DNA of 63,999 nt, counting the filler, from Olpidium bornovanus S191 (lineage: Eukaryota > Fungi > Olpidiomycota): NCBI GenBank assembly GCA_017911155.1. It is 32 parts of 32 records of this genome, joined end to end, with 100 filler letters (N's around TTAATTAATTAA, not from the genome) between each part and the next. Parts side by side here need not be neighbours in the genome. Positions count along the whole stretch, not along the records: positions 32,807 to 39,624 come from JAEFCI010009064.1; 31 more parts are not named here. The stretch is one strand, 5' to 3'. The number at the start of each line of letters is the position of its first letter. Within the stretch, counting starts at the first letter, position 1. The notes beneath the pieces were generated by a model. That model was not told the origin of the DNA and ran no database searches. It saw only the letters and a program-made list of their open reading frames with translations. The position numbers were made by a program, and so were the translations under genes. Shown one piece after another: positions 32,669-40,979 of this stretch.

Positions 32669-32808
32669 GTAGGGCGCATCTCGACGCCGGTTCTGTGCCC
32701 CGCGGGNNNNNNNNNNNNNNNNNNNNNNNNNNNNNNNNNNNNNNNNNNNNTTAATTAATTAANNNNNNNNNNNNNNNNNNNNNNNNNNNNNNNNNNNNNN
32801 NNNNNNCT

Positions 32809-34178
32809 TCATGGCAATTCCAATGTGAAATCAACACTTTCGATGTCGGCGCCACGCAGCAGCACCGCAGGATAGACGCCTAGCGGCGTGGACAAATCGT
32901 TGACTTGAAAATGTGTAGCCGAAGGGTCGGTTACGTTCCAGACTCCAGACACGACCGTGCTAGTGGCCGAAAATCAAGCGACGAGCGACCGGAACGAGTA
33001 TTAAACAGGACGCCGCTGGCCCAGGCGGTTGCAATGTACGGACGAAAACTTCGTTTTCCACGTACGGAAGTGAAAACGGATTGCGGAAACCCGCGGAAGT
33101 CATACGCGCAAGAAAAAAAAAAAACTCACCTCTCGTGGAGACGGAACGTCGCGGGGGGTTTTTGGACCGCGACCTCGGCCATAATGTCCAGCGACCGCCC
33201 CCGAAGCTCCGCACGCTTTGCCTGCAACAGTCGTTCCCGGACCCTCGGTTTCGGACGACCCCGGGTCTCGCGGACGAACTGCACCAGACGTCTTCGAAAC
33301 TCGTCCGTGTGCAATATGCCAAAGTGGTCTCCTTTTAGCCCGAGCTCCAGGCAGGCCGCTGCCCCGCCGCTATTCAGATGCTCTTGGAACGCTTGAGACG
33401 GCGGTATTTCCAGCAGTTCGTCCTCAGCGCTGTGGATGACTAGGTAGTGCGGGAAGTTCGGGCAGTCTGTCGGAACGTCGTGGTACTGAGGTGACGCATC
33501 GCGGAGCACAGCTAGCGCGCGCTCGGAATTGTCCTGAGGGCCAAAGGCCGTTTGAACGAAGTCAATGTACGACGGGTGCGCGTCAAGCATGCGCTTGATA
33601 TCAAAGATTCCTTCTACGGCCACAACGCCCTGCACGCAGTCCCTGAGTGTCCGCGACCCGGGGGGGCACAATTCCCCCAGGTACTTATCGACGAGGACCA
33701 GCAGGCCCGTGATCTGCGCGCCCGCGCTGTGGCCGCATAGGTAGATTTGTCCGGCATCGTAACCTTCCTCGGCAGCCTTGTCCCGCACGAGAGCCAGCGC
33801 TCGCGCCGTGTCCACCACGGGGCCCGGGTGCAGGAAAGGCTGCTCCGAGCTAGACAGCCGGTACCCGACGACGGCGACAAGGAACGAGCCCTCCGAGGCA
33901 AGCCGGTTTGCCAGTTCCCTGTACGCCTTCCTGTCCCCGGTCCGCCACGCCCCGCCGTGGACGTACACGACGACCGGCGGCGGAGAACCCCCTGCGCCGG
34001 CAGGATCCTCCGGAAAGTAGAAGTCGACAGCTTGCTTGTTCGCGGCGCCGCAGCTTCCGCCGTCGTCCCCGTACGGCACGTCCAGCACTTCTCTGACGCC
34101 AACGCGTGCGGTCTCACGGTTTCCGGCCGCATCGGCGGGGCTCCAGGCGGAGACACTCGGCTGGGCGGAGGTTCCCAT
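32809..34178 (-). CDS. Alpha/beta hydrolase (kynurenine formamidase/AFMID-like) fused to a C-terminal Gemin7 domain; 2 exons, 399 aa if the ATG at 34178 is the start
   Basis: Exon 1 34178-33130 has HGGAW, GHSAG, candidate Asp (SAEDELL) and His (GDHFG). A 170-nt GTGAGT..TAG intron leads to exon 2 32959-32809. The tail RAELRGRSL..TFRLHE|STVV..TD..FQV..LSTPLGV..LLRGADI matches Gemin7. Confidence 0.85.
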
Positions 34179-34368
34179 CTGCGTAGACCAGGGTAGACCC
34201 ACGGAGGTTGCTTCTGACGTAGGCGGTTTTGCCGCGAACCGGAGAAACTCGACTGCCGGCGGCGGCGCCGATCGTCGCGGGCAAAAAGGCGAAAGTGAAA
34301 CCGCCCGCAGTCAGGAAGGAAATAAGAAAAAGGAAAAAAAAACCCCTCCCGTTCCAGGGTCTTTGGAG
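34179..34368. promoter_or_regulatory. Short (about 190 bp) head-to-head intergenic region, likely bidirectional promoter
   Basis: Divergent ATGs at 34178 (-) and 34369 (+) on the same contig. Confidence 0.5.
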
Positions 34369-35151
34369 ATGGCGCGACGAAAGGCGCCGGCAGTTGCGCG
34401 AGGATCACGAGCACGAAGCGCGGAACTGAACGGCAGGCGACGGCGGGAAGCCGCTGTGGCGCAAACTGGGAAAACCCGCGCCGGTCCGCGCCTGAAGCCC
34501 GCGCGCACCCTTTCGTCGCGCGCGTGCGCGGCCCCCGCCGCGGAAGCCGCCTGCGATCCGGAAACTGCGGCACGGCGAGGCGTGGACTTTATCAACCGGC
34601 AGACCGGGCGCGCTGTTACTCAGTTCCAGTGGCGGGTGTACTCGCTCTGCAAGCAGATCCCGAAAGGTAAGGAACCCTGGCCGGGCTGCAGCTTCTGCCG
34701 CGGCCGAGGTAGTTCACGAACAAATGTGGGAGCCCCACGGCTGACTGAGGGAATGTGCGCGGTTCCCGTGTTCGTCATACCCAAGGTCAAGTGTCGACGT
34801 ACAAACTTATATCCGACGCGCTGAACTCGTCCCCGAGGGCAGGTAGGATCTCCGTTTAAATTTTCCGGCGGAACCCCGTGCTAATCATAAGCGGCGAACC
34901 GCACTCAAAGGAAGTGCCTCTTCCTAGTCGGCAATGCGCTCCGTGCGAACCCGTTCGCGCCCGACGTTCCCTGCCACCGCGTGCTATCAAGCACCTTTTT
35001 CATCGGAGGCTTCAGCGGCCAATGGGGCGCCGGGGATATGGTGGAGAAGAAGAAGAAGCTGCTGGAACAGGAGGGAATGTGCTTCGAGGGGTACCACCTA
35101 ACGTCGGATGCTAGGACAACGGCCGTTTTTAGAGATTTCAGCACAGCGTGA
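34369..35151 (+). CDS. MGT1: O6-methylguanine-DNA methyltransferase (C-terminal domain only), 3 exons
   Basis: TQFQWRVYSLCKQIPKG|QVSTYKLISDAL..PRAV|GNALRANPFAPDVPCHRV (PCHR active site)..GGFSG..KKKLLEQEG; stop at 35149-35151. Confidence 0.93.
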
Positions 35152-36802
35152 CCAGTGTCTTTCGCAACAATCGTAGGACAATTCGCGGTACTGCGCCGCC
35201 TCCCGTCTCCCGTCGGGAATCGCCTGGCAACGGCGGACATCCCTGTCTCCGCCGAAGCTCTCCGAGATCAATTCAAACAAACGCAGCCGTTACCCTCTCC
35301 CGCCAAGGGTAACCATCGCCTTCGTTTGCCGTCGCGCGCATCCGTTATTTCTTTCCTACTGCGCATCTTTTGCGCGGCACCTTTCATCCTAGTTTTCCAG
35401 AGGAGTGCGCGGAACGGCGAATATCACCCATCAATGTATTCCTAAATGGGTTCCTTCACCGAATATATGATCGGTGAGATAACGTGCTGGTCCGCACAAC
35501 TTCTCTACCGGTTGCCAACTGCAAAGTCGCGGCCTTGCTGTCAAATATCTTCCCGTAAGGGCTGATCTTCAGCCGGCGCTAAGAAACTTCGTTGCCGCCA
35601 ATTCCAACTCCCATTGCATGGAGAGCGGCGTTAGTAGAATTGACTTATTGCCGACGACTTCTTGAGCCTTGGTTGTAGACATGCCCATGCCCCATTCGTC
35701 CATACCAGCTTCCGCGGGGAGCCTTGTTGCCACGCAGGCTTAACGTGTTCGTTGCCTCCGGCTTGTAGGTTGGAGCAAACGCTGGCCGGTCGCTCAGGAA
35801 AGTTCCGGTGTCCCAACTCCTGTGGCTGCCATCTGTGTTCCAAGTCCCCCGTCCCAAGGCCCGCCCGCCCGCTCTCGACAGCCTGCTTGAGGAGCTGCTC
35901 GTGGTTTGCTGGAGGAGGCACTGAGGGCCGTCTTGCCGGACCGGGCCTTCGGAGCGCCTAACTGCCTCCGAGCGGAATGTTTTCGGCCAGTGCTCTCGCG
36001 CAGCCGACCGGGCATGTCAGTTACAATCTGATACTTGATCTTCAGGAGATACATTTTTTTTTGGTAATAACACAACCATTTTCCATTCTGTAATCATTTG
36101 TTATTAAAAACTTGTTCCGCCGGGCCGTTCCCCGGTCCAATCCGCAAAAAAAAAAAAAAAAAAAAAAAAAACAAAAAAAACAAAGCGCTCCGGAAACTCC
36201 CCCTCCCCACTCCGGCCCCCCTTTCCACCCCGCTGGAGGACAGAGAACCGGAAATCTCACTGACCGAAAACGACCCCACCCCGCCCCCGCTGCCGAAACG
36301 CGCGATGGTCACCATGCAGAAACAGGCTGACTCGTGGGTAAGCTGTTGGGGAGGAAAAAAAAAAGGGGGGGGGGGGGGGTTGGGGGGCCGGTCTGACGAG
36401 ATGGCTCGAAAATCGCGAGGGGCCACCCCGGGAGCAAGCGTCGTGCGGGAAGGGATGAGAGAACTCGAAGAAAGCCGCCTGCGTGGAAACGTTTCGGCGG
36501 GGAGAGGCGGCGCGCACGCTGGGGTGGTCGCGGAGGAAGGCCGTGACCGCGGAACCTGCTGTCCTGTTGTCGCTGCGGGAGGCCCTTCTTGTTCTGCTTA
36601 GAGGACGGGTTTGGAGGCGGGGAAGAAAGAAAACGAAAAAAAACTTGCGCCTTAGAAGGTTGCAAGATCTCGGCTTGCTTCCGCGCCGGCGCGGTGTAGT
36701 TCATCTCGCCCGTCGTTGCCGTACTTGTTGGTGCCGTGCCACGCGTGGAGTTGCCACGCGACTTGACCAAGGCCCCGCAGGTGCTCGCCCGCCGAGTTAA
36801 AA

Positions 36803-38811
36803 ATGCGGTTGACGCGGCATCCCTTGCTCATCAAAACCATCAAACAACGCTCGCCGCCGCAGAACGCGGCCCTAAATGCGCCGCTTATGCAGGAGGACCC
36901 GGAGGTCTACGCTATGATCCAGCAGGAGATGTTCCGCCAGTACTCCGGGCTGGAACTCATCGCCTCGGAGGTATGGGGAGCGGACCGCAGTGCAGTTTGC
37001 CGCGTTTTCCGATGTGGCGCCAACGTCGGGATCCGCGGTGTCGTTAGAACTTTACTTCGGCATCTGTAATGGAAGCCAACGGAACCGCTCTTACGAACAA
37101 GTACTCTGAGGGTGAGCGGCGCACCCGGTTTTGAGACGCGCAAGTCATCGTGGAAACAATTTCGGTTTACACATTTCCGCGAAGGTTTGCCTGGTGCTAG
37201 GTACTACGGTGGAAACGAGGTCATCGACCAGGTGGAGGAGCTCTGCCGCCAACGCGCTTTAAAAGCGTTCCATCTCAATCCTGAGGAATGGGGGGTCAAT
37301 GTCCAGCCTTACTCTGGTAATCCATGGCGCAAGGGTCATGTTTATCTTTGTGATTAGAACTATTATGGACTTTGCCTTCCTGATGCTCAGGATCGACCGC
37401 GAACTTTGCGGCGTTTACGGCGATCATCAACCCTCATGATCGGCTGATGGGGCTCGACCTGCCTTCCGGCGGACAGTGAGTCATGGATGTGGTTGACTTT
37501 TCCGCAGCATAGTCGACGGCAGCTTATCCGAATAATTATTTCCTGTGGGAAGCCTCACCCACGGATACCAGACATCGAAGAAGAAGATCTCTTCGTCTTC
37601 CATTTACTTTGAGTCCATGCCTTACCAGGTTGATCCGAAAACCGGTTACATAGACTACGACCGCCTTGAGGAGAATGCGATGCTCTTCCGCCCAAAACTT
37701 TTGATTTGCGGCGCAAGCGCGTACCCCAGAGAGTGGGACTACGCGAGAATGCGAAAGGTATGACATCCCACAGTTTCCGCCGCGGGCCTGCATTTAGTGC
37801 GGTTAAAACTCGTCGGGGCCGACAAACTGAAATTTCGTTTGCTGCTTAAGATCGCAGACCAACATGGGGCGCGTCTTCTGTGCGACATGGCGCACATCAG
37901 CGGGCTCGTCGCCGGCCGTGAGGCCGCCAGCCCGTTCGATTTTTGCGATGTCGTCACCACGACCACGCACAAGGTACGAATGCGTATCCCGGCTTTGCAA
38001 AATGGCGAGCTGTCTGCTTACTTCCGCCGCGTGCACGTGTAGACCCTTCGCGGTCCTCGCGCCGGTCTTATTTTCTTCCGCAAGCGCAGAGCGGACGGCT
38101 CCGACACGGACTTGGAGAGCCGGGTGAACCAGGCAGTGTTTCCGTCGTGCCAGGGTGGCCCGCACAACAACACCATTGCCGCCGTCGCCGTGGCCCTGAA
38201 GCAGGCCGCCGCTCCGGAGTTTAAAGAATATTGTGTCCAAATCAAGAAGAACTCGCAGCGGCTTGCCGAAGTGCTCACCAGTTATGGGTACAAGATGGTC
38301 ACCGGTGGCAGCGATAACCACCTGATTCTTTGGGACCTGAGGCCGCAGAAGCTCACCGGCAGCAAGATGGAGACGATCTGCGACATGGCTCAGTATGTCG
38401 AAGTTTTCTATCCGTTCGCCTCTGTAATCCACCTCCGGGTCCTCTAGGGCTCAGCCGTTTTTCTCGCCTTCTTTTTTCTGTTTGCGCAGCATCACGGTTA
38501 ACAAGAACGCCGTTCACGGCGACGTCTCCGCCCTCTCGCCTGGCGGCGTGCGCATCGGCACCTCCGCACTCACCTCGCGCTCTTTCAAGGAAAAGGACTT
38601 CGAGGTGGTGGGCGAGTTGCTCCATCGCGCCGTTCAGATTGCCCTCAAGGTACAGGAGAGCTGCGGGAGCAAAATGCTCAAAGCGTTCACCGAAGCACTG
38701 GAGAACAACGAGGAGGTCAAAGTTCTCAGGGAGGACGTCAAGACGTTCTCCATGGCCTTTCCCATGCCCGGGTTTGACCCCAATTCCATTCCTGAGAAGT
38801 TCAGGAAGTGA
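36803..38811 (+). CDS. SHM2: Serine hydroxymethyltransferase, complete and multi-exon
   Basis: LELIASE|NF..NKYSEG|[14 protein letters not shown]|[19 protein letters not shown]|TLRGPR..QGGPHN..ITVNKN..GVRIGT. Compartment (SHM1 vs SHM2) is not established. Confidence 0.97.
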
Positions 38812-39548
38812 GCTCTCGATCGTTCAGGTCCGTCCTGGTGCGCACCGACGCACGTAAAAGTCCTGTATTGGCGGCAAATTTCCGCTCTTGTTTGTCTTGT
38901 TACGTCGCCGGAGGCCGGATGCTGTTTTTTTTTATAAAAAAAAAAATAAATCGCGACGGCCGGCGAACCGCGCGCCAGAATTACGCGGGTACACTTATCG
39001 TAACTGATGTCGAGGTGTATTTGGGGATGAGCTTCCGTTGTCGGACTGTGTGCACGGATCAAAGCCTCCGGGTCGTTTTTGCTTCTCGGCGGTGCCATCC
39101 GCCGCTTTGGCCGGCGGAACAGAGATCATCTCTGTCCTGTAGAAAACGAGGAGGCTGGGCCGAGGCTCGAGCGGCGCCCCCCCCCCCCCCCCCTCCCACA
39201 CACACACACACACACGACTCGCTCGGTTCCCCTTTCACCATCATCACCAACAGCGTTTGCGCCGACCAGCGACTCACAAGTAAAAACCGGCGTCTGACGA
39301 CGCATCGGGACTGCAGACCCTTCCGCAAAACACAGTCAACTTGCACCACCGGACGCATTTAGTCTCTCCTCGAAAGTCAAAACCTTGTCAACTGCCAATC
39401 CCGCTCGCCAGAATCGTGACAATCGAACGTTTCAATTCTCGCGACGTCCGTCCACCTCGTAAAGTTTACATTCGCGTGCTTGTGTGCTGCCCCGCCCTCC
39501 CCATGTAGTTCGATTTCTTCGGACCGGGTGGGCGGGGCAGGACGAAAA

Positions 39549-39592
<44 letters not shown>

Positions 39593-40979
39593 GAAAGGGG
39601 GGGGGGAAAAAAAAAAAAATAAAANNNNNNNNNNNNNNNNNNNNNNNNNNNNNNNNNNNNNNNNNNNNTTAATTAATTAANNNNNNNNNNNNNNNNNNNN
39701 NNNNNNNNNNNNNNNNNNNNNNNNGGCCGCGCGCAAAAATTCCTTCAGAAGTAGCCAACGGAATAAGCAGGCTTACGCGCGAATCCCCCTGGGGGACGAC
39801 AAGAGCTTACGAGTTGTGACCAAAGGCAAAAAAAAAAAAAAAAAAAGCAACAAAGAACCGTTTTGAGAGCCATGCGGCGAGTCGGTAACGCACACGAACC
39901 GACGTGCCAGAGAGGATCTTCTGGTCACCTGACCCCACACCCGCCGGTAGCACCTCCATCCTTGCCAAGTGAAACATATACACACGTGAACCGCGCGGCA
40001 AAGGTTCTTGATTATTTGTTTTTTCTTCGTTTCTTGTCTCCGGAGCGCCGTCCGCGTTCTCGTCTGAAGTCCTTTCTTCGTTCGGCCAGTTTGATTGCTT
40101 GATTTCGCGGGCAGTAGGAGATTCTGTTTACCTGCGCGGCCTCAGGGACCCTCCAGTTAGATAAGTGTGCCTTGGATTTGTTTGCGTTATTACCAATGGT
40201 GGAATTTGACATTTTGGCGGTCAGAACTTTTGAGAGGGCGAGGCAGTGCCGGGCTACGTGCTTATTCAACTTTACTCAAAACTAACAAATAAGCACGTAA
40301 ATAAACAAACAAAGCGTTCTGGGCTATGAGCCCGCGCTGCAACTTTGGAGGGCAATTTTTTTTTTTTTGATCGCGTCGATTTGATACAATGAGGAACTGC
40401 TCAATTGTTTCGTGCTAGACTGCGCGCGCACGTCGCGGGCTTTTTGCCTTTGGATCTTTGCAGCTCCGTTTTGCTTCTTTGTTTACCTTGCGCATTGCCG
40501 CCGGCCCCCCCCTCGTCTTCCCCCCCCCCCTGCCTTTAGTTTTGATCTGGCCTCCAGGGTTTTTTTATTTTTTATTTTTTTTTATTTTTTTTTTATTTTT
40601 TTTTTATTTTCTGTTTTTCCCCCTCAGACGGTTCTTCCGGTCGGGCGAGCGAGTCGATGGCGCGGGGAAGACAGGAGGGAAAGGGGAAGGGGGAAGCGAG
40701 GAACGGGAAGGGGAAGGTCACGTGGCAAGTGACGTTGGTCGACGAAAACTCGGGAGAGACACAAACAAAAAAAAGAAAAACAAAAAAAAAGAAAAAAAAA
40801 AAGGAAAAAANNNNNNNNNNNNNNNNNNNNNNNNNNNNNNNNNNNNNNNNNNNNTTAATTAATTAANNNNNNNNNNNNNNNNNNNNNNNNNNNNNNNNNN
40901 NNNNNNNNNNCATGCCGCGCGTTCAAGGATCTGCGCCGAACGAGTCGCCAGGCGGGTGGGAAACGTTTGCACACCAAGT

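Follow-up and report, generated by a model that had tools for sequence, protein, structure and literature searches.

Human Gemin7 has an Sm-like fold with an N-terminal helix, and its N-terminus is a disordered tail of roughly 45 residues, not an enzyme domain. The Gemin6/Gemin7 heterodimer is brought to SMN by Gemin8, in S. pombe as in humans, and SpGemin6-8 are indispensable to fission yeast (PMC8287938); the exact role of Gemin6-8 in snRNP assembly is still poorly defined. The stand-alone fungal Gemin7 proteins include the SMN complex subunit of S. pombe and two Basidiobolus proteins of 82 aa, which are used here for comparison. The Basidiobolus proteins have the family (PF11095), a single intron and the C-terminal end in common with the Olpidium sequence described below. 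They have their own start about 8 residues before the LRxR motif, whereas the Olpidium domain has no start and lies directly after a 305-residue hydrolase.

This hydrolase shares its fold, core size, HGGAW and GHSAG motifs and catalytic Asp and His with Bna7 (S. cerevisiae Q04066; PDB 1vkh) and with chytrid proteins named as formamidases. Bna7 and its chytrid relatives are single-domain proteins, whereas the Olpidium protein adds the Gemin7 domain and an N-terminal extension of ~25 residues. The arrangement is reminiscent of the "Rosetta stone" fusions of compact eukaryotic genomes, in which two independent conserved genes are likewise brought into one frame with a minimal linker, and the Olpidium locus is itself compact, with a divergent intergenic region of 190 nt and introns of 85-170 nt.

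Olpidium, a lineage sister to the terrestrial fungi, is represented here by Olpidium bornovanus S191, a root endoparasite whose genome (assembly GCA_017911155.1) was obtained by assembly and binning of sequence from zoospores that had been washed off cucumber roots and were not axenic. The assembly is a MEGAHIT metagenome of short contigs, reduced to a conservative and incomplete bin of 29 Mb. All positions are those of the window, the whole stretch of 63,999 nt that was analysed, of which positions 32807-39624 are the whole 6818-bp contig JAEFCI010009064.1. An in-frame fusion of the two genes is supported at the gene and mRNA level (Table 1). We consider it probable that this two-exon gene is expressed as a single 399-aa protein, in which a Bna7-type hydrolase is followed by a 7-residue Pro-rich linker and a complete Gemin7 Sm-like domain (residues 313-399), and that the protein takes its place in the SMN complex via Gemin7.

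Gene structure and transcripts

The open reading frame at 33126..34202 on the minus strand has its first ATG at 34178-34176 and ends in ..RLHER, followed by a TGA at 33128-33126. In the sequence, this TGA overlaps a splice donor, AG/GTGAGT, so that retention of the intron leads to an immediate stop. The gene call on record is the unspliced ORF of 350 aa, which ends in the intron and contains hydrolase domains only; as this model stops in an unspliced intron, the Gemin7 part is effectively unannotated. The gene model is corrected here, and domain surveys would otherwise score Olpidium as having no Gemin7. When translated by script, the spliced coding sequence of 1200 nt yields 399 aa ending in ..STVVSGVW...FTLELP; its stop codon is the TGA at 32811-32809, and the contig ends 2 nt further on. 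The GC content of the intron is 0.51, compared to a GC3 of 0.66-0.75 in the exons. The frame runs from the hydrolase into the Gemin7 domain without a stop or a usable Met: in-frame Met codons are found at residues 1, 197 and 333 only, with none between the last two.

Table 1. Features of contig JAEFCI010009064.1, in window coordinates.
Feature	Position	Strand	Details and evidence
Exon 1, coding part	33130..34178	-	Residues 1-349 and first two bases of codon 350; ORF list, sequence, translation, RNA contigs colinear over 33130-34668
Alpha/beta-hydrolase domain, residues ~26-305	33264..34103	-	Pfam, chytrid alignment, AF2, fold matches
Linker, residues 306-312, within ..RETRGRPKPRV..	33243..33263	-	AF2 secondary structure; homologue ends
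Gemin7 N-terminal half (helix and first strand), residues 313-349	33130..33242	-	In frame with the hydrolase; Basidiobolus alignment, shuffles
Intron, 170 nt, GTGAGT...CACTAG, phase 2	32960..33129	-	Joint in X1 and X3 RNA contigs
Exon 2, coding part	32809..32959	-	Last base of codon 350 and residues 351-399 (Gemin7 C-terminal half); Pfam Gemin7, human and Basidiobolus Gemin7, RNA contigs
Region between divergent start codons, 190 nt (hydrolase-Gemin7 left, MGMT right)	34179..34368	.	RNA contigs cross
O6-methylguanine-DNA methyltransferase (MGMT), three exons	34369-35151	+	ATG at 34369, 190 nt from the hydrolase ATG
Serine hydroxymethyltransferase (SHMT), multi-exon	~36880-38811	+	Pfam SHMT, E 8.6e-32, one exon

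Logan contigs of two RNA runs, X1 (from a 2022 study) and X3 (from a 2025 study), match positions 34668-33130 and 32959-32807 with zero indels and skip exactly 32960-33129 (170 nt; CT..AC on the plus strand, that is GT..AG on the gene strand). They extend 169-573 nt past the end of the genome contig. Compared to the window they carry 5 SNPs, which marks them as derived from another strain and as evidence obtained independently of the genome assembly. Of the sampled words of 32807-34300, six RNA runs contain 0.82, a share which, by our own arithmetic, corresponds to the exon words without the intron and flanking words. The absence of the intron words means that splicing is efficient and that DNA does not make up the bulk of these libraries; spliced transcript occurs in at least six RNA runs. 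The four RNA runs with a lower share yielded short fragments only, which are uninformative on the domain boundary, and two raw-read runs under the same species label (X21 and X24), with 0 reads at the locus, are probably samples without the fungus.

Taken together, these data uphold the gene structure put forward in the sequence-only reading, which had the stop of ..RLHER overlapping a GTGAGT donor, a splice from 33130 to 32959, a frame free of stops between the hydrolase and the Gemin7 helix, and a linker devoid of any Met from which a free Gemin7 could start. The exon ends proved to be exact, and the frame is continuous.

In a MEGAHIT metagenome of short contigs, and with a contig that ends 2 nt past the stop codon of interest, such a frame could in principle be an artefact, in which a chimeric assembly or a sequencing error masks a stop or frameshift between two separate genes. 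We hold this to be exceedingly improbable, as the RNA assemblies of two other studies, from a strain that differs by 5 SNPs, give the same junction with no indel, and with only 7 residues between hydrolase end and Gemin7 start, an intergenic region could not have been lost there. A chimeric join near 33240-33300, the place at which the sequence-only reading advised to look for one, left no sign: the genome and the RNA contigs of both studies are colinear and free of indels there.

The agreement of three independent assemblies likewise speaks against a chimeric assembly. A hidden small intron in the linker, which would separate two genes, was set aside on the colinearity of the RNA contigs in that region.

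The positions at which genome and RNA differ are 32925, 34329, 34341, 34343 and 35170. The first is a G>A change that replaces Pro362, in a Gemin7-domain loop, by Ser, and the other four lie in the intergenic/5' region or downstream of MGMT. At 33842, one 3x contig of run X20 has A in place of G, a change that would put a stop at Gln113 of the hydrolase. Its distance to the contig end is exactly 31 nt and G is found in three other runs, so that it is probably an assembly tip or a sequencing error. Between 5 and 8% of the words of 32807-34300 were also found in runs X9-X18 (five other organism labels and root metatranscriptomes), which may reflect low-level Olpidium in plant roots or one short shared segment.

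The hydrolase and Gemin7 domains

Residues 63-268 match Pfam BD-FAE (E 1.2e-20), and there is a match to Abhydrolase_3 as well (E 4.1e-15). The catalytic set comprises H74 G75 G76 A77 W78, G149 H150 S151 A152 G153, D253 and H285, with the codon of the nucleophile Ser151 at 33728-33726; HGGAW, GHSAG, Asp253 and His285 are invariant in an alignment with five chytrid homologues. The closest proteins among 5.8 billion are chytrid, 262-305 aa in length and 31-41% identical. Two of the five chytrid relatives are called "kynurenine formamidase" by their source, presumably by automatic annotation, and the rest are listed as hypothetical, as alpha/beta-hydrolase or without a name.

The AF2 model (pTM 0.79) was matched by Foldseek with a probability of 1.00 to many members of the alpha/beta-hydrolase fold, among them fungal and animal kynurenine formamidases including yeast Bna7. 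In the ESM Atlas a 271-aa fungal cluster is matched with a TM of 0.90 by the hit, and the structural alignments there stop at residues 305-310. The alpha/beta-hydrolase fold and its catalytic equipment are thus present. As to its substrate, formamidase is a best guess. The Swiss-Prot fold matches are mixed, with kynurenine formamidases (A5DNX8, Q04066, Q8K4H1) standing beside ICME and Lip esterases at similar E-values; the sequence match to PDB 1vkh reaches only E 1e-5 and ranks behind family-IV esterases, and isoprenylcysteine methylesterases and family-IV esterases fit the Olpidium model about as well as Bna7 does.

The point at which the hydrolase ends can be read from its relatives. The stand-alone chytrid homologues end at FVRE plus 0-8 residues, equivalent to Olpidium residues ~303-311, which is the fusion point. 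In the predicted secondary structure the hydrolase finishes with a helix (292-305), after which residues 306-312 form a coil and a further helix spans 313-338.

Pfam searches and structure predictions were run on separate pieces of the protein, and the alignment that spans the exon junction was made by script. Against Pfam Gemin7, whose gathering cut-off is 25 bits, exon 2 alone (49 aa) reaches 35.1 bits (E 1.3e-8) and covers positions 35-76 of the 76 in the profile. It also matches human Gemin7 in PDB entries 1y96_B, where the human protein is paired with Gemin6, and 7bbl_D; the Olpidium C-terminal half aligns with the human protein over 39 residues (..TD..F.V..L.TP.GV...LLR..DI), a similarity which is weak (20 bits), and the N-terminal half is undetectable there by sequence alone. 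In an exhaustive phmmer search over 1.84 billion representative proteins, exon 2 gave a single match at E <= 0.001, the 82-aa Gemin7 of Basidiobolus ranarum (K7432_012033; E 1.3e-4, 44% identity). A word-index search added only its sister protein in B. meristosporus (K493DRAFT_404393), which is 75% identical to that of B. ranarum.

Across the exon junction, Olpidium residues 323-394 align without a gap to residues 9-80 of the Basidiobolus Gemin7, with 27 of 72 residues identical (38%); the Basidiobolus protein itself covers positions 8-76 of the Pfam profile. The score of the exon-1 half of this alignment (27 residues; Basidiobolus 9-35) was reached by none of 20000 shuffles, and on its own this half had no Pfam Gemin7 match at E <= 10 and no match to Gemin7 in the PDB. 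Both Basidiobolus genes contain a single phase-2 intron after ..HLFE, at the same codon and in the same phase as the Olpidium intron after ..RLHE. This shared position and phase argues strongly for orthology of the Olpidium tail with fungal Gemin7 genes and against a chance resemblance. Judging from the alignment and the predicted structure, the whole Gemin7 domain is present, N-terminal helix and strands included. Since 8 residues precede the aligned block in the Basidiobolus protein, the Olpidium Gemin7 would start at about residue 313-315, and the domain begins seven residues after the hydrolase ends. A small stand-alone protein with its own start codon, as is usual for the family, is not what is found at this locus.

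On the domains, too, the sequence-only reading held. The hydrolase it described as intact (HGG, GHSAG, Asp, His) has all these elements invariant among the chytrid homologues; the tail that was to score against the Gemin7 profile does so above the cut-off through exon 2; and its claim that the last ~85 aa span the whole of Gemin7 is borne out by the gapless 72-residue alignment to Basidiobolus, the human match covering the C-terminal half. Its overall interpretation, an in-frame hydrolase-Gemin7 fusion completed by splicing, is accordingly supported by the frame, the exact splice and both domains.

One locus could nevertheless give two products, a free Gemin7 being made besides or instead of the fusion through an internal promoter or start (Met333 or a non-AUG codon) or through proteolysis in the linker, in which case the SMN complex would receive an ordinary small Gemin7. 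All other Gemin7 proteins found are stand-alone, with 82-92 aa; the linker (RGRPKPRV), basic and rich in Pro, has no predicted structure; and Met333 (33182-33180) lies in a good initiation context, with A at -3 and G at +4. Transcript ends are invisible in the contigs, and since the same RNA contigs run on into the divergent MGMT gene, their continuity is no proof of a single transcript. Initiation at Met333, however, would give a truncated Gemin7 of 67 aa which lacks nearly all of the N-terminal helix (313-338) alignable to Basidiobolus Gemin7, the stretch from residue 197 to 333 offers no other in-frame ATG, and in the well-covered runs no RNA contig starts in that region. We therefore regard a second product as rather unlikely, and retain the single fused protein as the preferred reading.

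Distribution, origin and possible consequences of the fusion

The fusion was absent among the hydrolase homologues, all of which are unfused and at most 41% identical, and among the Gemin7 homologues; no chytrid hydrolase homologue with a Gemin7 domain was found in the search of 5.8 billion proteins. A scan of JGI metagenomes returned 80 distant loci, probably mostly bacterial from their low identity, with no Gemin7-like sequence by tblastn. The ESM Atlas neighbours of either half included no cluster combining both families, and a literature search returned no paper naming both Gemin7 and formamidase. What is new at this locus is the combination of two known families in one reading frame, a domain architecture seen to date in a single species.

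The usual route to a Rosetta stone fusion is read-through between neighbours, but the relatives examined have no such adjacency. In Polychytrium the hydrolase and Gemin7 genes are not adjacent, an IF2 gene lying downstream of the hydrolase; in Basidiobolus Gemin7 is not beside the hydrolase, a SNAP-family gene of opposite orientation being its upstream neighbour. An ancestral synteny as the origin of the fusion was rejected on these grounds. The fused frame probably arose by a deletion in which the hydrolase lost its stop codon, Gemin7 lost its start codon and the DNA between the two genes disappeared.

Protein database searches returned no second Olpidium homologue of either half. This absence is weak evidence, as small intron-containing genes are easily missed by annotation, and with a metagenome bin that is incomplete, a Gemin7 or Bna7 gene apart from the fusion may lie at another locus. 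One scenario that builds on this is that the fusion is a redundant or decaying copy, a recent accident that is transcribed but dispensable, while a functional stand-alone Gemin7 and a kynurenine formamidase reside in the unassembled part of the genome. The conservative 29-Mb bin from a non-axenic culture would leave space for such genes, and the low-depth X20 contig, with 33842 G>A and its stop at Gln113, could be read as a sign of decay. At a depth of 3 and exactly 31 nt from the end of its contig, however, that variant looks like a typical assembly tip, and three other runs have G there. Both domains, moreover, retain all family-invariant residues in a frame that is intact in two strains; GC3 is 0.75 and 0.66 in the two parts, against a GC of 0.51 in the intron; the spliced transcript is found in at least six RNA runs; and the searches yielded no other Olpidium homologue that could take over. 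A decaying copy is thus, in our estimate, very unlikely.

If the single fused protein is made, as we consider probable, it would enter the SMN complex via its Gemin7 domain, by analogy with S. pombe and humans pairing with Gemin6 and being recruited by Gemin8. The hydrolase would then hang from the N-terminal helix of Gemin7 by the short Pro-rich linker, as an N-terminal appendage, and may well keep its own enzymatic role. An unspliced mRNA would give a 350-aa hydrolase with only the first helix and strand of Gemin7. Functional coupling of the two activities need not be assumed, and there is no indication that the hydrolase acts on snRNP components; the fusion may be neutral, with two independent functions, tolerated in a compact genome, and we take this as the default reading. 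A far more elaborate scenario is that the fusion is the sole Olpidium Gemin7 and places an active serine hydrolase permanently in the SMN complex, where it would act on a substrate of snRNP assembly or link NAD/tryptophan metabolism to snRNP production, with intron retention serving as a switch between hydrolase-only and SMN-bound forms. We give this scenario only a slim chance.

Two unrelated housekeeping genes are fused here unusually closely, which remains a one-species curiosity as long as no functional link is demonstrated. Should Olpidium prove to have no second Gemin7, the fusion would nevertheless mean that the Gemin7 N-terminus tolerates a 33-kDa folded enzyme in vivo, which would be useful for tagging and structural work.

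Neighbouring genes on the contig

The region between the two divergent start codons is transcribed and probably serves as a promoter in both directions, with 5' ends that overlap. The runs that cross 34179..34368 lack intron words, which argues against DNA carry-over as the source of the crossing contigs. Both MGMT introns (34667-34785 and 34843-34927) are confirmed by RNA contigs. The encoded protein contains the PCHRV active-site motif, and its last exon matches Pfam DNA_binding_1 (E 6.3e-11); the gene call on record (151 aa) runs into the first intron.

Between MGMT and SHMT, about 1.3 kb (~35450-36800) hold no convincing ORF on either strand. ORF translations near 36100-36250 give long poly-Lys and poly-Phe stretches, which points to homopolymer A/T runs. 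The SHMT call on record is a partial model of 266 aa, overlapped by a 405-aa model on the opposite strand which has no Pfam match and looks spurious. A similarly Lys-rich stretch occurs at ~39520-39600, and a short CA repeat is the likely source of His-Thr/Cys-Val repeats near 39180.
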